Shown: positions 29,928 to 53,510 of the stretch, one piece after another
How the letters are laid out: each line of letters starts with the position of its first letter
Position numbering within the stretch: the first letter of the stretch is position 1
From: Rhodosorus marinus CCMP1338
Taxonomy: Eukaryota; Plantae; Rhodophyta
DNA: 64,000 bases
Assembly: GCA_029953675.1 (NCBI GenBank)
Contig: JAMWBK010000001.1
Coordinates: forward strand, 310,001-374,000
Direction: 5' to 3'
The notes under the pieces: generated by a model
What the model was told of the DNA's origin: nothing
The model's input: only the letters and a program-made list of their open reading frames with translations
Database searches by the model: none
Made by a program: the position numbers and the translations under genes

Positions 29928-31235
29928 ATGGCGGCGGGAAGCAGTTACATGCAGACTGCGAATGCAGCGGAGAGGAATCAGGAGGCTACTGTATTTGTAG
30001 GAGGGTTGGATGAGAAGGTCTCGGATGAAATTTTGTGGGAATTGATGATTCAGGCTGGGCCGGTAAAGCATGTGTACATTCCTCGCGATCGAATTACGAG
30101 GCAAGCCCAAGGGTACGGGTTTTGTGAGTTTCGCACAGAAGAAGATGCGCAGTACGCGGTAAGAATTCTAAACATGATAAAACTGTACGGCAAGCCGATC
30201 AAAGTACAACCGTCATCGGAGCACAAGCGAAACATGGAAGTCGGAGCGAACATATTCATTGGAAATCTAGATCCGGACGTCGATGAGAAGACTCTCCACG
30301 ACACTTTCAGTGCATTCGGACTTATTATCGAAACACCGCATATTATGAGGGATCCTGAAACAGGTAATTCACAGGGTTATGGGTTTGTCAAGTTCAATTC
30401 TTTCGAAGCCTCGGACGCCGCGATTGAAGCGATGAACGGTGGATTTATCATGAATCGGTCCATTGTAGTCCAATATGCATTCAAAAAGGACGGGCACAAC
30501 AAGGTCTGTTGCCCAGTTAACTAGCCTTCTCCCTGATCTGGGATCAGATTGTGCATAGCTCTGGAGAGCGCTGAACTGAACAAATTGTGATGTTTTCAAA
30601 TTTAACTCATAGGAACGGCATGGATCTCAGGCGGAGAGGCTACTGGCGGCTAAAGGACAGGATTCCCTCGCGAATTCGAGCAACGCTGGGAACTATGCTC
30701 CTCCTGGAGCAGGTGGAAGCGTCCAGAACCAGTGGCAAATGCCCCCCAGCGGACCGCCGCCACCAAGAGCTGGGGGCTACGGATATCCTGGAGGCTATGG
30801 AACTCCCGAAGGCGGCGTACAACCACCTCCGCCACCACCGCAGGGCCCGTCGGGTGCCCCCCCAGCTATGGGAATCCCAGCTCATGCTCCGCCATCTGGG
30901 CCAATGGGTCAACCTCCTGCGGTTCCTCCTCCGCTTCCAGCTCCAGCTGACCCGAGCGGGCAGATGCACCAAACATCGGCGATGCGTGCTCCTATGCCGC
31001 CACCAGCCCAGTATTCGCAACAGTACAATTCCACGGTGCAACCTCCGGCAGCTGAGTACGAAAGCACTGTGAACAACCAACCAACTCATGCATTCTATCC
31101 TCGAGGCTTACGTTCTCTCTTCTCGCTGTTTTCTTCAGAATGCCGCCTCCCCCTGGAGCACCAACGCGCCCGCCGCCTCCACCGGTTCCAAGACAGCCCA
31201 TTGAAAACATGCATCCACCTCCACCGCGAACTTGA
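29928..31235 (+). CDS. SF3B4: Splicing factor 3B subunit 4 (SAP49)
   Basis: [32 protein letters not shown] (RRM1), [26 protein letters not shown] (RRM2), [13 protein letters not shown], Pro-rich tail. 3 exons. Confidence 0.95.
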
Positions 31236-31855: not shown

Positions 31856-33702
31856 TTACAATCCAAAGTTACGGAAGTTATCTGTCAAGTTTCCTGAAGG
31901 AGGGTATCCCGGTTGTTGCGGGTTGATCGGAGCCATCCCTGGATTCATTGGCTGTTGGATTGGTATCATCCCCGGAGGTGGAGCCATGCCTGGCGGAGGC
32001 ATCGCCATTGGCTGACCAGGGGGAGGTGCCATTGGAATTCCCGGAATTAGCTGCCCGGGCATGGGCTGTCCGGGCATAGGCTGCCCTGGCATAGGCTGCC
32101 CTGGCATTGGCTGCCCTGGCATAGGCTGCCCTGGCATTGGCTGCCCTGGCATAGGTTGTTGAATAGTCCCTGCGGGAATCAACACCTGGTGCGGTGCGGC
32201 CTGTACTGCAATGGGATGGGTACGGGCAGGCGGTGCCACATCAACTGGAATAAGCAGTTCTGCCTGTTCTCTGGTCAGCCCCTGTGATGAACTTTCGGCT
32301 GGAGGCTTCTTTCCTTTTGCCTTCCCCTTCTTAGACTTCCCCTTCGACTTTCTCTCCGGAGGGGAGTCATAGTCGCTTCCAGAATCCTCAGATTCTGATC
32401 GATCCTTCTTCTTCGTCTTCGATTTCGAAGACTTCTTGCTTCCCTTCCTTGTACCTCTCTCCCTCTCTTCATCAGTATCACGAGAATTGCTCGACGCCTT
32501 CTTCTTCTTAGTTTTCGAAGACCTCACTTGACGATCAGAGCCTGAATCTTCTGAGGAAACATGCTTCGAGCGTCTTGAAGACGTCGTTTTCTTTCGGCCG
32601 TCGTCCCTTGCTTCATCGTGACTCCTATGAGAAAATGCGTGGAGAAACGAAAAGCGTTTCATGGTCAGAGACAGCTACTTCTGAAGCGCTCAGGGCAAAT
32701 CGTAAGGATTTTATGTTGTGGACCAGCCACAGCGGTGTCCTCCGAGGAAAGGCAGATCCACCCATGAGGAATTTCCTGGAGAGGTTGTACCCGACCGCTT
32801 CCCCCATTTCAAGCGTGCAATGAGGCGAATACGTACCTTCTGCTGCGGTAATCATCATCATGATAATGATCGCTCGATCCTCTCCTATCTCTGCGAGATG
32901 CACCGTTCCGATCATCTCTGTACGGATCATTCATGTACGGGTCATCGATTGGAATCGATCTTGAAGGACCATAACTTGGTCTTCTGCCATATTCCGGTGG
33001 TGGTTGCCTCGAATTCTGTTGATACGGGTCCTGCGGGGCATACCGAGGCGGTGGCGGAGCTTCACGATAGTGCGGATCACGGTCATAATCACGGGGGTCT
33101 CCGTACCCTTTGCCCCCTAACGGTGGCGGAGGAGGTTGACTTCCCGAATAATTCGCAGTATCGAACTGCCATTGATTCATGGACTGCCCCCCGGGTGTGT
33201 ATCCACGTGCTCCTTGGGGTGGGCCATAACTCCCCCGGGACTCCAGCCGCGGTGGATAGTCTCCAGGTTGTTGAAAAGACCCTCCACTAGGAACACCTCT
33301 GAAGCTGGAGGAGCTTCTCCCTAACTTTTCTTCCCTCGACAGTTCCCATGAACCTTGGTACTTGAGGAAAATAAAAGCCCGACAAGATTCTAGGTCGCCG
33401 ATCCTCGGTAACTGCATAACATCCTTCTCGTAGGGGTCATACTTGGCCAAATACTTCCGGTTGCACCGATCATTCCCTACTGATTCAAGCCTCCTCAAGT
33501 CCGACTCCAGAATCACATCCTCGTCTATATTCCTTACGCTCCGTTTCTGGCTCCGATGAACCTCCGCACAAGTTTCACAAACAAAAGTTCCAATCTGCAC
33601 ACAAATATATCGAGGATCCTGACGCTCACAATCCGCACAAATATGATTCCCCGCAACACGCTGCAAATCTTGCATCCATCTCCTCCTATCCTCTTCACCC
33701 AT
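31856..33702 (-). CDS. ArfGAP-domain protein with long low-complexity tail
   Basis: GNHICADC...GTFVCETCAEVHR (C-x2-C-x16-C-x2-C-x4-R). Intron 32836-32625 joins the two ORFs. Ser/Lys-rich and Pro/Gln-rich C-terminus. Confidence 0.9.
32051..32155 (-). repeat. Coding 15-bp minisatellite, (QPMPG)x7, in the ArfGAP gene
   Basis: Seven near-identical CTGCCCTGGCATAGG units. Confidence 0.95.
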
Positions 33703-42991: not shown

Positions 42992-44584
42992 ATGGCTAAC
43001 ATTCAGGGGCTGAACTCCCTAGATGTATTGGGGGGTTTGCCTGACTACGCGAAGGACTGGTTGACAACTACTGAGCATGTACCTACCCCCAACGCGGAAA
43101 TGCTGCAGAAGTATTTACCGATCACTATCGAGTCTTTCATAATGAATACGGAGGTCAAGTTCTCCATGCTTCCTCATTTTGAACGTGATAGTATGTGGTT
43201 TGCGTCTACACTGCCCGAGACTCCCAACTCGCTTCCCGTGAAGTCGGTTTTGAGCGCCTACGGGGCACCGCCTCAGACTGTTCACGCGAGAACAATACTC
43301 GACTTGCGAACTAATAATACGCGAATGCTTGAGGTAGTGCGGTTTGATGACGACAGCTTGTGCTGTTCGAAGACTGTGAGATATGAAAACGGAGATATTA
43401 AGACCGTCAGTCACTTCTTACCTTCGTCAACGAGCGAATTCAAAGAGGAGTTCTGCCTGAGGCGGGACACAAATTTCGAGTGCAGATTTTGTGCTTTCCT
43501 GCGAGTCGAGTGCCAATGCGCAACAAGTGTAAAAATGCGTAGCTGCTCATCTGGGCTAACTTCTTTGAACAACAATTCGACAAAACATTTGCACTGGACA
43601 GCTCTTCGAGATTTCATGGGAAACGTTTTCAACCATAACATTGGCAGGACACAAATGTGCATGTATGTTTCCCGCGGAGCAAACAAGTGGGGGCGCGTTT
43701 CGCAGAGAAATTGTGTAGTCAGATATCTTTCCCATGACAATGAAGATGGCCTCTTAGTGAAGGAGAAGGACAAGTACATCCTGGAAAGTTTCGCGCTTTT
43801 GTCTCCTGGAGGATTGCTCAGGTTTAAGTTTGAGAGTGATGTTAGCGGGTCGGAGGGATGGGACGCCTCCAACCGTTTCTATGACGGGATGGAAAACGAC
43901 CGGAACTCTTATTCCATGATAGACCCGCTGGCAGAAGACGGTGTTTTCAAGGTGGAGCTTGGGTTCCAGCGCTCGCTCATGTCAGGTGATTCATTGCTGT
44001 CAACCGAGAAAGAGGTGGATTCGCAGACTTTCAGCGAGTCGGCAAGACTGGCGCTCGAGTACTCAGGAAGTGGTACTACCCTGCAGACTGATGAAGTACA
44101 GAACACCAAGCGCGTATATACCTCCTTAGAAAACGACATGGTGGACGCAGTGGATTTGGAAGACTCAAAACCGTCAACTGACAGTGACCCAGTAGCGAAG
44201 AAGCGAAAACTTGAAGATATCAAAGACGGCTCCTCATTGGTTTGTGAACATTGCTCGAAGGAATTCAAGAGGAAGTATGACTTGCGGCGGCATGTGACAA
44301 CCGTGCACGAGAAAGTGAGAAAGTTTGCATGCAGCATGTGCGACTTGCGCTTCCTGCAACGGGCACACTTGACAGAGCACATTTCGTGCGTTCACGAGAG
44401 GAGGAAAGCGAACTTCTGTGCAAAGTGTGAATTGACGTTTAGCTCAAAGAGCCGGTTAGTAAGACATGATCGTGCGGTACACCAGAAGCTACGCCCCTAT
44501 GTCTGTGGCGTATGCAATAACAAGTACTTCCAGAGGACTGACCTTAAAAAGCACCAAGACGCTAAGCATGCAAACGTCTTTTGA
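42992..44584 (+). CDS. C2H2 zinc-finger protein (4 C-terminal fingers), 530 aa, intronless
   Basis: CEHC...HVTTVH, CSMC...HISCVH, CAKC...HDRAVH, CGVC...HQDAKH. NLS-like KKRK. Unassigned N-terminal domain containing CRFCAFLRVECQC. Confidence 0.9.
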   Translation: MANIQGLNSLDVLGGLPDYAKDWLTTTEHVPTPNAEMLQKYLPITIESFIMNTEVKFSMLPHFERDSMWFASTLPETPNSLPVKSVLSAYGAPPQTVHARTILDLRTNNTRMLEVVRFDDDSLCCSKTVRYENGDIKTVSHFLPSSTSEFKEEFCLRRDTNFECRFCAFLRVECQCATSVKMRSCSSGLTSLNNNSTKHLHWTALRDFMGNVFNHNIGRTQMCMYVSRGANKWGRVSQRNCVVRYLSHDNEDGLLVKEKDKYILESFALLSPGGLLRFKFESDVSGSEGWDASNRFYDGMENDRNSYSMIDPLAEDGVFKVELGFQRSLMSGDSLLSTEKEVDSQTFSESARLALEYSGSGTTLQTDEVQNTKRVYTSLENDMVDAVDLEDSKPSTDSDPVAKKRKLEDIKDGSSLVCEHCSKEFKRKYDLRRHVTTVHEKVRKFACSMCDLRFLQRAHLTEHISCVHERRKANFCAKCELTFSSKSRLVRHDRAVHQKLRPYVCGVCNNKYFQRTDLKKHQDAKHANVF

Positions 44585-45348: not shown

Positions 45349-46882
45349 TCATCTTTCCGACACTTTCAGTGCCGGGATTTTCTCTCCAGTCGCCTCGTCT
45401 ACCGCAAAAGCTCGTCCGTCAATGTAAACATACACGTTCTTTTTCTCTCCGGCATCTTGAGGAGACGAAGATCGGTTAGCCTTCGATTGTAATGTGCGAA
45501 GCAGCTCTTCTTCCTCGTATTCATCCCAGTCCTCGTCTTCTTCGTCGTAGTCTTCGTCAAACTCCTCCTCATCCTCAGCAAGCTCTTTGTCCTTTATCGT
45601 ACTAATATCGAGGTCATCCTCTCGCCGCGAACCCCTGCCCTTCCTTTTTGCATGAACTGTTGTAACGTGGTCATTGTCCGACTCGAAATCGAGGTGTATT
45701 TCGGGAAACTCTAATGGGGTGTCCTTCGTCAGTTGGATTTGTGACACGTCGATCTTGCCTGGTGTCTCCGGTTCTGGGAGCGCCCCAGATGATCTAAGTA
45801 CCTCCACCAACGACTTGTCCTTTTCGATCCTCAAAAGTTCCCGCTGCTTGTTCTCCTCACGAGCTTTCTTTCGGTCTAACTTCGCCTGTTCTCGAGCCTC
45901 CAAGCGCTGCTTCCTCTTCGCTTCCAGACGAATTCTCTTTTCCTCAATGGCTTTTTCCGCCTCTGCTTCGGCGATTGGGTCTCGCTCTTTTCCACTCCGG
46001 GTGGCATTGTAAGTCAAAAGGCTTTCCCGAATTCTCGCACGGTGCTCCGCTGAGAGGGGTTTCCTCCCATTCACCCTTAGTTTGGACCGCATTCCACCAA
46101 CTACCCGCTCTCTATAGTCGGGATCCGCCCACATCTCCTTGATCTTCTTAGAAAGCTTCTCCCGAGTTTCATCGCTAAGCTGTCTCCCGACTCTGTTCCT
46201 CCCTACAGGACCGTCGAAACCACAACCGTTAGTCTAGTCAACGTTATGAAGATCACCTGTTCCAATTGTTCTTACCTCTACTTTCGGTTGAGCTTCCTTC
46301 GTAAAGCTCATTTAGGCTCTCCCTAAACTCCTCGTCCTCGAGAGATTCGTTTATGTACGCATTCAATTTGTTCTTCACGTCTTCACGGTACTCGAACGGT
46401 ACCGTGCCGGACGTGAACTCTGAGATCAGGGACGGAACTTGAACTCTTCCTTTCCTCACCTTAGCACCCTCTCGAAGTGCTTTCATAGCGTTGCTTTCGC
46501 GAATTTTTACTTTGATCTTCTCCCTCGTTTCAACAGTTTGCTTCCTTCCGACATTTACCTTTCTCATTTTTTCCCTCATCTCTGGCCGTAGCATTGCCGC
46601 GCGTGTCCGCTCCGCAATTTTACGGCGCGTTTCATCGGAATGTTTCCTGCCCTTGTTCCATGGCGTGTTGCCCTTATTTGCTAGTGAAATCTTCTTCTTC
46701 GTTTCCTCTCTATGCTTCCTCCCAAGCCAGTGAGGAGTTCTTCCACTACCAGAAACCTCTGCCTCCCCTTCCGGGGTTACACTCATAGCGGTAGCAACGC
46801 GAAACACCCCACCCTCACGTCTATTGCGAACGCAACCATTCCTAGCCTTCAACCTCCAAGCCGCAGGAGAGACGAACCCCAT
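45349..46882 (-). CDS. Plastid-targeted NUMOD3 (IENR2)-repeat protein (2 exons)
   Basis: GRKHREETKKKIS, TPWNKGRKHSDETRRKIA, GRQLSDETREKLSKKIKEMWADP, KPLSAEHRARIRES. Intron 46275-46203. MGFVSP transit peptide (an upstream ATG at 46912 is an alternative start). Confidence 0.85.
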
Positions 46883-48069
46883 CCCGGCCAATCCAAGCCT
46901 ACACTCCTCCATTCCTCCCCTACACAGTACCCCTAAACCCAGACAACCACAGAAAGCTCTCCACGAAAATCGCTACCTTAGGAACAAGATCACGAAACAC
47001 AAGGGAGTTCAAGTTCCATGACTCCACTGCAACCCCAACCCCCCCCCCCCCGCCCCTCTGACTCCAACCTAAAACTCCATTATGTACAAAAAAAAGAAAA
47101 GAAACGAGGGATATATAAAAAAAGGGTCCTTTTTCGTTCCACAAGGCTTACGAGAAAATCTTCTCCTTGTCCACTACTCAACCTCTTCCAGCCCCACCTT
47201 TCCCCCTCCCCCTTTCCCTTTCTCCTGCCGCCTAACCCAAACCAAGCCTTCCCCGCCAGCGACTTCATCTCCCACAAAATGACATATTCATCATTTCTAA
47301 AACCATGCCCTGTGGGGGGTCTTCCCCATGAATAAAAAAAAGGGTCTTTTGACATAAAACTCCGTGCATGCTTAGAAATTCCTTTAAATTCAACCCCTTT
47401 TTTTGCTCCATGCACTCCACGCCAAATCGGCATTCCGTACTCGATGAACCCCCAAGGTTACATGCGAAAAAAAACAAAAAAACAAAACGGTACACCTTGA
47501 AAGTTTTTTTTTTTTGAGGGGAAAGCCAACACTATTTTTAAAATTAAATATCTCCCCTCCCTTTTTCTGAACTCCCGTCCTAAAGACAAGCATGTGTACT
47601 CCTCTGAAATCGTTAATCAGGAGTATCATCTCCACAGATTTAGAAAAGACTATAGCATGGCAGAAATATTGTTTTATAAAACTGTAAACTTTAGAACAGT
47701 TGTTTCTTGTTTTTCGCAAGCGGAGCTCGAAAATGAGCCGTAAATACGCTGTGGTTCTTTTTTTTTGTCATATCCGCTTCTGGACACCTGTCGGCAATTT
47801 CGATCTCCGTCGGTGTTGGGACCTGCCGCCTATGGACAAGGTTTTAAAGCCGTGCTATATGCTATCCCGAGATGGTTGGTCATTTCATTGGTTTGTAAGG
47901 ACGCCACGTGTCCTTTGTGAGGGGGGGGGAAGGGGGTCGGGGAGAGGTTACCGACATGAGAAGAGAAGGTCTGTAGCTGAACGGAGGCTTGCGGTGGACA
48001 AAGATGAGGTTGACGGCTGCCGTCATACTGAGCGTGAAGAGCCTGAATAGTCGTCGCTAAAGCTCGATT

Positions 48070-48450: not shown

Positions 48451-49600
48451 AAAGAAGAACGTTCCGGAAATTCTCCCATACACCAGTTGCTGATCTAGAC
48501 TCAAGCACCCACAGTACGTTCTCCATAAGAGTTCTACTAACAACTTCTCTGAACGATCGCATCGGACTTATAACCATTGCGTTCTCATCGTACCCCTACA
48601 AAATATCCAGAATCCTACACCGGTCAACATATGTACAAATAGCAGCAAGAAATTACTACTATTGCTGCAATCTTGGCTAAGTAAAATGTACAGAAGCTGT
48701 TCAATTTTTTTCTTAACATTGTTTTTTGTCGCGAAACTTTGCGCATCTGCTTTTTCCGCCAGAATGCAATTTTTAGTTTTCATCAGGGAGGGTAGCAAAA
48801 TTCCCCTCGAGCTCTGAAAACGTACAAAAAAAAAAGAAATCCGCCCAACTTTCCATTGGGATAGAGGCGTAGGGGTTTTAACCATAGAGGTTGGGAGCTG
48901 CGGTGCGAAAGCAGTCATTTTCAGGACTCGAGCTAGCTAAAACAAAAAATATTTAGATCAAATACTACCGTAATTATGAAAAACCAACGGCCATAAAGCG
49001 TTTTTGTTCCATAAAATGAAGCAAAAAATATCATAGGATCTAAATTAGGATTATACATGATGTTTTCTGGGGATGGATGAACCCGGCGATCAATAACGGG
49101 CTTTTTACTGTTTAGGACGATTTGCGTTGGAGTCATCACAATGGGACTTTCAATAGAAACGTTTGTCTGAGGGCTTGGCATCCGGGGGAGGGGGAGAGAA
49201 CCATGCTTAGGGCTTCATGGGAAGTAAAGTCCTGACTCGGAGGAGACAAGTTAGTAGAACTGGTTCCAACTCTGGTTTTGAAAGGAGTGTGAGGGTCTCA
49301 GGAAAGACGGATACATTTGTAGTGGGTGGGGAAAGGGAGGAGGGGAGGGAGTTTGTGTTGTCTTGCTGAGAAGGAAGTTAGGTTTTTGACAATGTCTGGA
49401 GTGGAATTGCTGTTGAGGGGTAAGATGGTTAGGAAGGGTACTTTGTGACGATTTAATTGGATGTTTTTGTGCTTGATGATTGCTGCTGGAGGGACTGGCT
49501 TTGGTATGCATGTCTAGTTGTTTATGCTTGTTGGTAAATTCGTGGTGGACGAAGAGTGCGGAGAGCTTGACGATCTTTGAAAGAAATCTATTCGTGCGCT

Positions 49601-50370
49601 ATGGGCTGTATACAAAGTAGTGAAAAGAAGAACGCGAACCACAGGAGCTTGCTGCTGTTGGGAATTGATGGAGCGGGGTCGACGACGGTCTTGTATCAAC
49701 TTGTGCAGCATGAACGGGTTGAGACGATCCCAACCCTCGCTTTCAATCGTGAGACACTCACTTTCGAGGGTATGGAGTACGAAATATGGGACATAGGGGG
49801 AAATGACAAGGTATTTTTTTCAGCAGCTATATCAGATACTGAACCCGTATTGCTCTCACTCAGGGCGCTAACCAGATTTACCGAAATGGAGTTTGCTAAC
49901 CAAAACTAGCCTTCCTATCAATCATCGCTAGGTTCGACCACTGTGGACAAAGTACGCGCGGGAGGCGCATGCCATTATCTATGTTGTTGACGCAACGGAC
50001 AAGAATCGGCTCCCCATGGCCGCACAGGAGCTGAAACTCTTCATTGACGATAGCGAAAATAATCATTATCCAACATCGAAGAACCCATTGCTGATATTTG
50101 CAAACAAGCAGGTGGGGATGGATTTCAGTCTCATTGCCGAAACAAGCTCAGCGAGGACTTATTAGCCCAACCTGTGTTTGCAATATCTCCACAATTGAAA
50201 ATTTACAGGAAATGGATGGGGCGAAAAACGTAGATGAAATGAGAGAGGCTCTCGGCATGGACTCACTGCCGTTTTCGAACTACAAGATCGTTGGGTGCTC
50301 CGCAAAAACCGGGGACAGTCTGAACGAAGGCCTCCATTGGCTAACGCAACAGTTGAAGGAGCCGGAGTAA
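49601..50370 (+). CDS. ARF/ARL-family small GTPase-like protein with atypical G motifs (3 exons)
   Basis: Exons 49601-49810, 49932-50111, 50209-50370. MGC N-terminus, LLLLGIDGAGSTT, ETIPTLAFN, WDIGGNDKVRPLW, IIYVVDATD, LLIFANKQE, CSAKTG. Confidence 0.9.
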
Positions 50371-50649
50371 CTCCAGCGAGCTTGCTTGACTATGTATCTA
50401 AGCGAGGTATGAGTGAGTATGAGCTTGGCATGAGTTCAGCTTGTCTACCAGCGCAACAACGTACTCATTGTCCTCGCAGCCCGTTTATTGAAAAGAATCT
50501 ATGTGACGTTGTAAATCATTGGTTTGAGAATCATAAAACAGAAACCCACTGTTTCAGAGGCTCCGCAGCAGAAATAAAGAATGTAAAACGCTTGTAGATT
50601 TTTTTTGCATGCGTCTTATGGACGTCGATGGCAAGGTTCCCAAGTAATA

Positions 50650-51550
50650 ATTGGAGAACTCAGTTCAGCAGGCTCTCCACCTGCAGCGCGTAGTTACCAA
50701 AGCTGTTAATTGTTTCATGGTATTCATAGCACATGAGGATTGAGCTCAACCTTCTACCCACTTCCAGCGGGCACGAGAGGGAGAGGCTGCAATGAGATCT
50801 TTACAATCTGTAGCTTCGAAGCTCAACTAAAAGCTCTGCTTACGGCGCGCCTACCCAGGAGGCACCTTTTCACAGGGGGGAAACGATTGATGGAAAGGCT
50901 CACGAACAACACTCTTTGCAGCTTCTCTGACCAAAAATTGTCCGTGCACCCGGTGCACAAGGCATGCGCGCTGTATTGCAGTGCTCGGCTCTTATCGATT
51001 CTAATAAATTTTGGTACCACAGTATTGTACGAAACGTACTATCAGCGTTGAATTACGAAAAAAAACTCAGAAAGGCAAAAGCCTACTCCATTCAGTGTTC
51101 AGTCCATAATAGGCTAAATGATTGAATCTTAATCTCGATCGGTCCCGCCGGTGACTAGGAAAAGTTAAGCAGAGAGGTATGGCTGCCTGCTAGCTACTAG
51201 ATTCGGTGGCTTATGAGGATGATATATTGGCTTCAGTGAAAGCACGCATTCGGAGCCAACTATTAGAAGAAAGATTGGTGGGAAATCCCCTAACCGAGAA
51301 ACAGACCTGAAGTAGCCCGACGGCTGTTGGTTCCCTCTTCAGAGTTGGGAGTGACAAAGGCTTCAGGAGAGAGGTCTATGAGTAAATGGAACGGAAAATT
51401 TCCACAGCTTTGTTCCTTCATTAAGCTGTCCAGGATCCTTCCTCTCAAGTTCACGGAACAGAGAAAGCCTCTGCGAGTAGCTGCATAAGTTTCCGAATCT
51501 AATTGGACAGAAAGCCCTGATTCACGGATTGGTGATTGAAGATATGTGAT
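50650..51550 (+). mobile_element. Decayed Gypsy protease to RT N-terminus relic
   Basis: CSALIDSNK...KPTPFSV (retropepsin-like), then QLLEERLV...T*SSPTAV...KGFRREVY, like LLEKG.I.PS.SPWSSP...R...DY. Confidence 0.5.
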
Positions 51551-51797: not shown

Positions 51798-53510
51798 ATG
51801 GATATATGTTTTGTTTCTAGTTTTCTGGGCGCTCGCGCCCGGCGTTCTCGCGGAGCTGGGCAAGGACTGACGCGGAGGGGAAATGTGACCACGATGGTCG
51901 CTTTGGAGGCTAATAAAACCGATCCTAGCTTGTCCACTTACTATGGAAGAGGGAATCCGGTGTTTGGGAGAGTGGTAACAGCGATGGTAAATGGGTCCGC
52001 CCGTTGCTTTGTGTGAGATATTCGTCCACCAGCCTGCAGCCTGTGGTTCTTAATGTTCGCAAATCTACACTCAATTCTTCTAGGTTACGCCCTTTAAACC
52101 TAACAATCCGAAGGAAGTGGACTACACAGTTGCGGAGCAGCTTGCGGTCCACCTGGCGAAGAATGGTGGGGTCAACACTAACCTACAGAAAGATGGAAAT
52201 CTGTGTTCTCTTTGATTTTCTTCCAGGACGGCTGGAACTAACCAAGTCATCTCCCCGCAGGAAGTGACGCCTTGGTTATCGGAGGTACCACTGGCGAGAG
52301 CCCTACTTTGACTTGGTCCGAACAATACGAGCTCTTCAAGGTTGTGAAGCAAGCCGTTGGAAGCAGCGTTAAAGTAGGCCGTAGAAGCTACTCCACCTAT
52401 CCGTATAGAAGAAATGAGAACTGATCTGATCGCAACTAATGCGATTGTTATTGTCAGGTTATCGCCGGTGCAGGATCGAATTCCACAGACGAAGCCATTG
52501 AGGCTACGATCAGAGCTGACAAAATGGGCCTGGATGGAACGCTACAGGTGATACCCAGAAAACACAGGCCAGCTGCGCATAGGGAAGACGATTAAGACAA
52601 TGCGTCTAAGACTGTGCTGTGCTTTGTGTTTGGTCAGGTCGTTCCTTACTACAACAAACCTCCACAGGAGGGCCTGTACCAGCACTTCAAGGCTGTGGCT
52701 GAGTGTGCCCCTGACCTACCAGTTATGCTGTACAACATTCCCGGTAGAACAGGAATCAACATGAGTGCGGAAATGACCGCAAGACTGGCTAAGATCCCCA
52801 ATATCATCGCTACAAAGGAGGCAAGCGGTGACATAGACCAGTTTGTTGAAATTCGGCGGTTCGTTCTTTTCCGTTGTCGTGACTACTACTATGCTGAAAA
52901 ATCAGCTTCTGACCAGCTTAACACGCCGTCCGCCGCGGATTGTTTTTATGGAACCTCCTCTCATCTCAGGTTGACCGATCCGGAGTTCGCAATGTACTCT
53001 GGGGATGATGCGATTGCACTTCCACTTTGTTCGGTAGGTGCAACTGGAGTAGTCAGCGTTGCCAGCCATATCGTTGGCAATGAGATCCATAAGATGGTAC
53101 GGAACTGTATGAAGACAAAGCAGACCATGACCAGGACGTCGTCATGCAGTTTTAGTCGGATTGAATGATGACCTTTCTATCATATTGCTGCGTATCAGAT
53201 CGAATTGTTCTTCGAGGGCCATGTTTCGGAGGCGCTTGATATACATTTGAAACATGCTGGACTTTTCCGAGATCTCTTTTGTATGGCAAACCCAATCCCT
53301 ACAAAGGCCGCTCTCAGACTTCTCGGTTGGAACGTTGGACCCCCTCGACTACCATTGACGGTATCGAAAAGCAGCCTCACCATTACCCAGCGCTAGAGAC
53401 GGATTTTCTGATATGACTCCCCAATACTGTCTTTCTCCTTGCTGCAGGATGCAACCGATGAATGCACTGAAATAATTACCAACCATTTGAAATCTTTGAG
53501 CCTCCTGTGA
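51798..53510 (+). CDS. dapA: 4-hydroxy-tetrahydrodipicolinate synthase (DHDPS), plastid-targeted, cyanobacterial type (about 7 exons)
   Basis: [72 protein letters not shown]. Confidence 0.96.

Follow-up and report, generated by a model that had tools for sequence, protein, structure and literature searches.

The stretch of DNA analysed here (the window) comprises 64,000 nucleotides of contig JAMWBK010000001.1 (assembly GCA_029953675.1) from the red alga Rhodosorus marinus CCMP1338. It carries a forward-strand gene for a protein of the ARF family of small GTPases with altered nucleotide-binding motifs, which an original prediction made from the sequence alone had put forward as a candidate pseudo-GTPase. 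We read and spliced the region 49201-50800 by hand. This gave a coding sequence (CDS) of 552 nucleotides, encoding 183 amino acids followed by a stop codon (Table 1), and only short open reading frames (ORFs) on the opposite strand. The product is identical to KAJ8908400.1 (R. marinus NDN08_005109), annotated only as a 'hypothetical protein', and the NDN08_005109 annotation on this contig and assembly matches the coordinates of our gene model exactly. The three exons and the motifs quoted in the original prediction (GIDGAGSTT, TIPTLAFN, WDIGGND, NKQE and an N-terminal MGC) were all recovered in the rebuilt gene model. The Pfam Arf domain (PF00025) was matched over residues 10-178 with a score of 169.4 bits (cut-off 22.3 bits; E = 6.5e-50), and the closest solved structures by sequence were ARF3, ARF1, ARF6 and ARL1, at about 40% identity. 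Measured against a catalytically competent small GTPase, GIDGAGSTT of G1 lacks the Walker A lysine, WDIGGND of G3 lacks the catalytic glutamine and NKQE of G4 departs from NKxD. The G2 threonine, the DxxG of G3, the NKx of G4 and the SAK of G5 are retained.

The gene is expressed, its introns are removed as modelled, and purifying selection on it is strong, as judged with two transcripts, L001 and L006, of the sister strain R. marinus MMETSP0011 (JGI 3300017118). The cDNA L006 is spliced, with AATGACAAG joined to GTTCGACCG and AACAAGCAG joined to GAAATGGAC, which confirmed both modelled junctions; Glu131 of NKQE is therefore fixed at the mRNA level by the second of them. The four motifs of the window protein recur in three independent transcriptome proteins of R. 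marinus (P0001, P0224 and P0229); together with L006 these exclude a sequencing or splicing artefact, where the earlier view had been that a sequencing error is unlikely. The accompanying argument that the lysine and glutamine changes each need two base changes is arithmetically right relative to the canonical codons, but it is beside the point, as the ancestor of the family already lacked both residues (see below). Aligned with L001, the exons were 91-96% identical and free of indels (exon 1, 96.2%; exon 2, 93.9%), versus 71-85% with indels in the introns and untranslated regions (UTRs). Intron 1 was 71% identical to L001, and the 5' region 49235-49600 and the 3' UTR were 80% and 79.5% identical to the sister strain, all three with indels. 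The CDS differed from that of L001 by 25 synonymous and 7 non-synonymous codons, giving a non-synonymous rate (dN) of 0.016, a synonymous rate (dS) of 0.27 and a dN/dS of about 0.06 by three methods. No amino-acid replacement in L001 fell inside any G motif, and silent changes were present within the TIPT and GGN codons. The low dN/dS, the indel-free exons beside diverged introns and UTRs, and the spliced transcript all support the suggestion that this is a maintained gene. In the MMETSP0011 transcriptome, the fully spliced L006 occurs alongside L001, which retains both introns and was broken by gene callers into the fragments P0068 and P0226.

Homology searches returned a tight group of relatives with 40-59% identity to the window protein. 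All close relatives with a named source were red-algal (Gracilaria, Gracilariopsis, Porphyra/Pyropia, Porphyridium, Hildenbrandia and Cyanidium), the Gracilaria sequence carrying the label 'ArfX2'; the metagenome members of the clade have no taxon name, and its restriction to red algae was judged on the named members. Scored against a profile of the clade, members reached 194-333 bits, and single-domain canonical ARFs stayed at or below 191 bits. The name ArlRhodo was given to exactly this group by Vargová et al. (2021; Genome Biol Evol 13:evab157; PMC8358228), who describe a red-alga-specific paralog of ARF that predates the red-algal radiation and has an unresolved origin, with an N-myristoylatable Gly and an S-palmitoylatable Cys as its hallmark. 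One sequence in our set (P0163) is exactly the published PpuArlRhodo1, and another (P0009) is a close match to CcrArlRhodo2. We built a neighbour-joining (NJ) distance tree, not a maximum likelihood tree, with red-algal Arf1, Arl1, Arl2, Arl5, Arl8 and Sar1 and one Volvox ARL as outgroups. In 92/100 bootstraps, the window protein and 43 others grouped in one clade with every one of the eight published ArlRhodo sequences; within it, the window protein was placed, weakly (50/100), with PpuArlRhodo1 and Porphyra-type sequences. By this grouping, its red-algal source and its Gly2 with a nearby Cys, the gene is the R. marinus member of ArlRhodo, an ARF paralog from the red-algal stem lineage. A profile search of 1.84 billion cluster representatives found no ArlRhodo-like family beyond red algae; it added two clade members only (P0259 and P0266) and one ARF1-like sequence with Thr in place of the lysine (P0355), and its top matches were mostly tandem-ARF proteins. 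The family was already known, and the R. marinus gene, which lies outside the data set of PMC8358228, is a new member of it.

We then compared the nucleotide pocket across the family. The P-loop lysine was present in none of the 59 non-redundant clade members, which range from Cyanidiophyceae to Florideophyceae and include named sequences from Cyanidium, Galdieria, Cyanidioschyzon, Porphyridium, Porphyra/Pyropia, Hildenbrandia, Chondrus, Gracilaria and Gracilariopsis. In the clade alignment, where column counts include redundant cluster members, the lysine position holds Ala (39), Ser (19), Thr (17), Gly (1) or Arg (1) and no Lys, and the catalytic glutamine position holds Leu (63), Asn (6), Gln (5), Met (2), Val (2) or Ala (1). 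Thr also occurs at the glutamine position among ArlRhodo proteins. Typical members, such as those of G. sulphuraria and C. merolae, have GLDGxGATT, then GGL or GGT, and NKQD or TKQD. The deviation goes beyond chance: non-ArlRhodo ARF-family proteins in the same alignment have Lys at G1 in 150/150, Gln in G3 in 139/150 and the Asp of NKxD in 150/150. Each of the three cyanidiophyte genera sampled is represented in the clade, so the loss is ancient. The glutamine is retained in a handful of members (P0005, P0146, P0170 and P0171), and PpuArlRhodo2a-c of Porphyridium (PMC8358228 supplement 2) keep GKT and have GGS in G3. The lysine and glutamine losses are therefore separable within ArlRhodo. Monophyly of the set without lysine was recovered in 37/100 NJ bootstraps, and PpuArlRhodo2a-c may either have branched before the lysine was lost or have reverted.

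The two remaining changes are distributed differently. NKQE was found only in R. marinus sequences, with NKQD in 97% of the clade; Ala in switch I was shared by these sequences and their nearest relative, P0002, alone, with Gly in 92% of the clade. The four pocket changes differ in age: the lysine and glutamine losses are family-wide and ancient, whereas the other two are seen in the Rhodosorus lineage only. The interpretation given in the original prediction is partly supported; it captured neither these differing ages nor the membership in a named family.

All other contacts to nucleotide and Mg2+ are as conserved in the clade as in working ARFs. The Mg2+-binding Thr28, switch I Thr45, Gly67 and Lys129 are each conserved in 100% of the clade, Asp64 in 98%, and Asn128 and Asp131 in 97%; the Ala or Gly of G5 and the P-loop glycines are likewise kept. 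A position scan of the clade against other ARFs identified Cys3, Gly24 (in GLDG), Leu46 and the lysine and glutamine replacements as clade-only signature residues, and found no new clade-conserved Arg or Lys able to compensate for the lost lysine. Arg39 was considered for this role and rejected, as it is invariant in the 14 closest sequences but not across the wider clade. Almost all residues found at the lysine position are small (Ala, Ser, Thr and Gly), which speaks for a steric constraint in a pocket that is occupied.

Several single sequences also deviated in the pocket. The ArlRhodo-like P0266 has Cys at the lysine position (GLDCSGCTT), and P0355, otherwise canonical and ARF1-like, has Thr there (GLDAAGTTT). 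Three metagenome or transcriptome proteins of unassigned taxon (P0095, P0065 and P0112) keep the lysine, have MG(x)C N-termini and score near ArlRhodo; odd G3 motifs (WDICGND, KAPGGER) occur among them. They could be relatives from outside red algae or merely long branches.

An AlphaFold2 model of the window protein showed a complete ARF G-domain (predicted local distance difference test, pLDDT, 83.6; predicted template modelling score, pTM, 0.83) with the interswitch hairpin and W63-D-I-G-G of the ARF fold. Residues 1-10 were disordered, and the only internal stretch of low confidence was an insertion before PLLIFANKQ. This insertion is clade-specific (SENNHYPTSKN, encoded in exon 2) and adds 5-6 residues relative to canonical ARFs. 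The best Foldseek matches in the PDB were GTP-form structures of ARL1, ARF1 and ARF6 (query TM score 0.82-0.85, root-mean-square deviation (rmsd) 1.6-1.7 Å), and GDP-form ARF1 structures fitted worse (query TM about 0.7, rmsd at least 4.5 Å). The closer fit of the model to GTP forms is suggestive only.

In canonical ARFs, an amphipathic N-terminal helix couples GTP binding to membrane insertion. The corresponding segment of the window protein (residues 2-15, GCIQSSEKKNANHR) is hydrophilic and three residues shorter than that of ARF1. Its maximum hydrophobic moment is 0.28, compared with medians of 0.36 for the clade and 0.55 for canonical ARFs, and the amphipathic helix that serves as the myristoyl/GTP switch is absent. 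In the clade, 92% of sequences have Gly2 and 93% have Cys3, a position at which only 1% of other ARFs have Cys. The MGC sequence had earlier been read as a myristoyl/palmitoyl N-terminus; it is present, the acylation is predicted, and it matches the published ArlRhodo trait (PMC8358228). The ARF amphipathic-helix switch is thus replaced by a hydrophilic linker bearing a predicted dual-acylation site, Met-Gly-Cys, of the G-alpha type.

Comparison with known systems places these features in context. The window protein shares about 40% identity, the fold, WDxGG, RPLW, NKQ and SAK with canonical ARF1, ARF6 and ARL1. However, those proteins have GKT, GGQ, an amphipathic myristoylated N-terminal helix and a cycle driven by guanine nucleotide exchange factors (GEFs) and GTPase-activating proteins (GAPs), whereas the window protein lacks the lysine, the glutamine and the helix and has Cys3 and the 5-6-residue insertion. 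Most ArlRhodo proteins naturally have the Leu of the GTP-locked mutants ARF1 Q71L and ARF6 Q67L (WDIGGLD), but these mutants keep the P-loop lysine and normal nucleotide affinity, and the window protein has Asn rather than Leu. Among other families, GMS proteins of the IRG family still act in a nucleotide-dependent manner. These proteins (Irgm1-3; PMC2532785) resemble ArlRhodo in being membrane-bound regulators with a natural, conserved substitution of the P-loop lysine (GKS to GMS). They differ in belonging to the dynamin-like/IRG family, in having Met instead of a small residue, in being confined to vertebrates and in regulating GKS paralogs. G-alpha i/o proteins carry the same MGC myristoyl and palmitoyl signal, a parallel already drawn in PMC8358228, but the analogy extends to the anchor only, the Pfam G-alpha match of the window protein being below threshold (30.6 against 48.8 bits). 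ArlEM, a putative ARF-family pseudoGTPase of Eumicrosporea proposed to be of class i (PMC13393502, 2026), is likewise a lineage-specific ARF paralog that is predicted to be N-myristoylated and S-palmitoylated and is conserved despite non-canonical G motifs. Most of its G motifs are mutated and sometimes deleted, whereas ArlRhodo lost just the lysine and the glutamine.

We propose that ArlRhodo is a permanently membrane-anchored, non-cycling protein of ARF fold that probably binds guanine nucleotide, is unable to hydrolyse it and acts as a constitutively 'on-shaped' landmark, and we give this reading a probability of roughly 0.55. The pattern of motif conservation is consistent with a nucleotide-binding, hydrolysis-dead pseudoGTPase with Rnd- or RhoH-like behaviour, and the near-perfect conservation of the other nucleotide contacts favours such a protein over an empty scaffold. 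By sequence criteria, the designation as a candidate pseudo-GTPase holds. Myristate and palmitate, if added as predicted, would hold the protein on the membrane whatever its nucleotide state. Its pocket would still be occupied by guanine nucleotide, bound independently of the lysine and probably more weakly, and GTP, being more abundant in cells, would be expected to be the predominant ligand. Leu at the catalytic glutamine position is the classic block to hydrolysis in ARF1 (Q71L), and ArlRhodo would be unable to hydrolyse GTP with or without an ArfGAP present. The glutamate finger of Sec7 exchange factors works against the P-loop lysine, so ArlRhodo would be unlikely to use them. The protein may serve as a membrane landmark or effector recruiter, controlled by its expression and by a palmitoylation cycle or depalmitoylation instead of a GEF/GAP cycle. 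Dependence on nucleotide may be weaker still in the Rhodosorus lineage, owing to its Gly-to-Ala change in switch I and its NKQE in place of NKQD.

Several points weigh against this proposal. Loss of the lysine in Ras-superfamily mutants usually cuts nucleotide affinity by orders of magnitude, and the position scan gave no clade-wide basic residue to compensate for it. Binding without the Walker A lysine is read solely from the conservation of the other motifs, and these could have been kept for fold stability or partner binding instead. The GTP-like shape of the AlphaFold2 model is no evidence of nucleotide state, and the acylation is a prediction only. The Rhodosorus protein itself may depart from the family norm, since most members have neither NKQE nor Ala in switch I.

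The main rival explanation, which we consider doubtful but the most credible of the alternatives, is a nucleotide-free scaffold, that is, a class i pseudoGTPase as defined in PMC12490416 and PMC13393502. Here the pocket would be empty and the ARF fold would serve as a lipid-anchored protein-interaction module. The absence of the lysine from all 59 non-redundant members points this way, and Rhodosorus adds NKQE and the switch I Ala. There is also a precedent in ArlEM of Microsporidia, a lineage-specific, putative class i pseudoGTPase of the ARF family with predicted myristoylation and palmitoylation (PMC13393502), and non-switch surfaces are used by class i proteins, the pseudoGTPase domain of AAGAB being one example (PMC12490416). 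However, the class i pseudoGTPases described so far have lost most of their G motifs (PMC12490416, PMC13393502), whereas Thr28, Thr45, Asp64, Gly67 and NKxD of ArlRhodo are 97-100% conserved across red-algal classes, as in working ARFs, and almost only small residues are tolerated where the lysine was.

We judge it unlikely that the protein is a GTPase that still cycles, in which a partner, homodimer or dedicated GAP acting in trans, or else a monovalent cation, takes over the roles of the lysine and glutamine. The remaining catalytic-site residues are all intact, the glutamine persists in the four members listed above, the GKT of Porphyridium ArlRhodo2a-c means that the family is not uniformly 'dead', and a gene with an ArfGap domain lies in the same window. 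Set against this are the prevalence of the hydrolysis-blocking Leu, the presence of Q71L structures among the best fold matches, the lack of a conserved new basic residue in the clade, and 10-kb flanks that share no conserved neighbours with other red algae. We regard as very improbable that NKQE has re-tuned the base pocket of the Rhodosorus lineage to a nucleotide other than GTP. The gene is strongly constrained, and the change of the guanine-specifying Asp to Glu is confined to R. marinus, where it is fixed in 4/4 available sequences (one from the genome, three from transcriptome assemblies), but Glu retains the carboxylate that pairs with N1/N2 of guanine, the known specificity switch is Asp to Asn, and the rest of the family keeps NKQD. 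A pseudogene or an assembly or annotation artefact, which nothing favours except the unusual motifs, is refuted by the intact ORF, canonical splice sites, spliced cDNA, dN/dS of 0.06, three transcriptome assemblies with the same protein and orthologs across Rhodophyta.

A bolder form of the non-cycling, nucleotide-bound reading can be put forward only tentatively: ArlRhodo would be an ancient, lysine-independent binder of guanine nucleotide, older than the red-algal radiation, that is permanently 'on', its control having shifted from a GEF/GAP cycle to the myristoyl-palmitoyl cycle. If true, this would constitute a lysine-independent binding mode in a Ras-superfamily G-domain, and the Rhodosorus protein (Ser27, Ala47, Asn68, Glu131) would have the most derived pocket known. 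Within the searchable literature, only the naming paper and its preprint use the name ArlRhodo, and pseudoGTPases are not linked to any red-algal ARF-family protein. In its main text and searchable supplement text, the naming paper covers the distribution, origin and lipidation of ArlRhodo and makes no mention of a P-loop lysine, Walker A, catalytic residues or pseudoGTPases for this family (PMC8358228). The family-wide pocket without lysine and glutamine thus appears to be unreported, although it may be mentioned in figures or in papers outside the search. PseudoGTPases, Arls included, are already an accepted concept; ArlRhodo is nonetheless a clean, ancient and testable case.

Red algae have undergone severe genome reduction and kept very few ARF and Rab genes, and ArlRhodo is a rare gene-family innovation of their stem lineage. 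The pattern of the pocket sharpens the question of whether a Ras-superfamily pocket can hold GTP without its lysine, and our finding predicts a non-cycling membrane landmark controlled by acylation. Cyanidioschyzon merolae is a genetically tractable red alga. According to PMC8358228, just one of its seven ARF-family genes encodes ArlRhodo. The question is therefore directly testable.

Table 1. Features of the ArlRhodo gene and of neighbouring genes, in window coordinates
Feature	Position	Strand	Remarks
Exon 1	49601..49810	+	codons 1-70: MGC acylation site, G1 GIDGAGSTT, switch I TIPTLAFN, G3 WDIGGND
Exon 2	49932..50111	+	codons 71-130: interswitch/switch II RPLW, VVD, SENNHYPTSKN, NKQ of G4
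Exon 3	50209..50370	+	codons 131-183 and stop: Glu131, G5 CSAK, C-terminal helix
Intron 1	49811..49931	+	121 nt, GT..AG, phase 0; absent from cDNA L006
Intron 2	50112..50208	+	97 nt, GT..AG, phase 0
5' UTR/upstream region	49235..49600	+	sister-strain transcripts L001 and L006 align from 49235
3' UTR	50371..50640	+	covered by sister-strain transcripts
Met-Gly-Cys	49601..49609	+	N-myristoyl Gly2 and S-palmitoyl Cys3, predicted
Codon 27, TCG = Ser	49679..49681	+	P-loop (Walker A) Lys position; same codon in L001
Codon 47, GCT = Ala	49739..49741	+	switch I Gly position
Codon 68, AAT = Asn	49802..49804	+	catalytic Gln position (ARF1 Gln71)
NKQ of G4	50103..50111	+	end of exon 2
Glu131, GAA	50209..50211	+	first codon of exon 3; completes NKQE
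G5 CSAK	50296..50307	+	exon 3
Exon with two RRM-like repeats	29928-30524	+	Pro-rich ORF downstream
ArfGap gene	32809-33702	-	single-exon ORF of 297 aa; PF01412 7e-20, then Pro/Gly/Tyr-rich tail
C2H2 zinc-finger gene	42992-44584	+	
NUMOD3-motif gene	45349-46912	-	annotated 496 aa; PF07460 1e-17; Lys/Glu-rich acidic tail
Dihydrodipicolinate synthase (DHDPS) gene	~51894-53510	+	intron-containing; 6e-40
INO80-type SNF2 helicase gene	from ~56667	-	large; DBINO, SNF2, Helicase_C; continues past stretch examined

The ArfGAP noted earlier at a distance of 16 kb proved real. It lies upstream of ArlRhodo with unrelated genes between them; nothing links the two, and its proximity is probably coincidental, as had been supposed. 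Nothing convincing was shared within the 10-kb flanks of ArlRhodo in Rhodosorus, Gracilariopsis and Porphyridium. A C2H2 zinc-finger gene adjoins ArlRhodo in two of these three (Rhodosorus and Gracilariopsis), probably by chance. The exon with RRM-like repeats presumably belongs to an SF3B4-type splicing factor. The DNA-binding motif NUMOD3 is typically found in homing endonucleases, and its occurrence in a nuclear, apparently cellular gene is unusual. ArlRhodo itself is intronless in Gracilariopsis (L003 10001-10588) and Porphyridium (L004 7650-8192), compared with two phase-0 introns in Rhodosorus.

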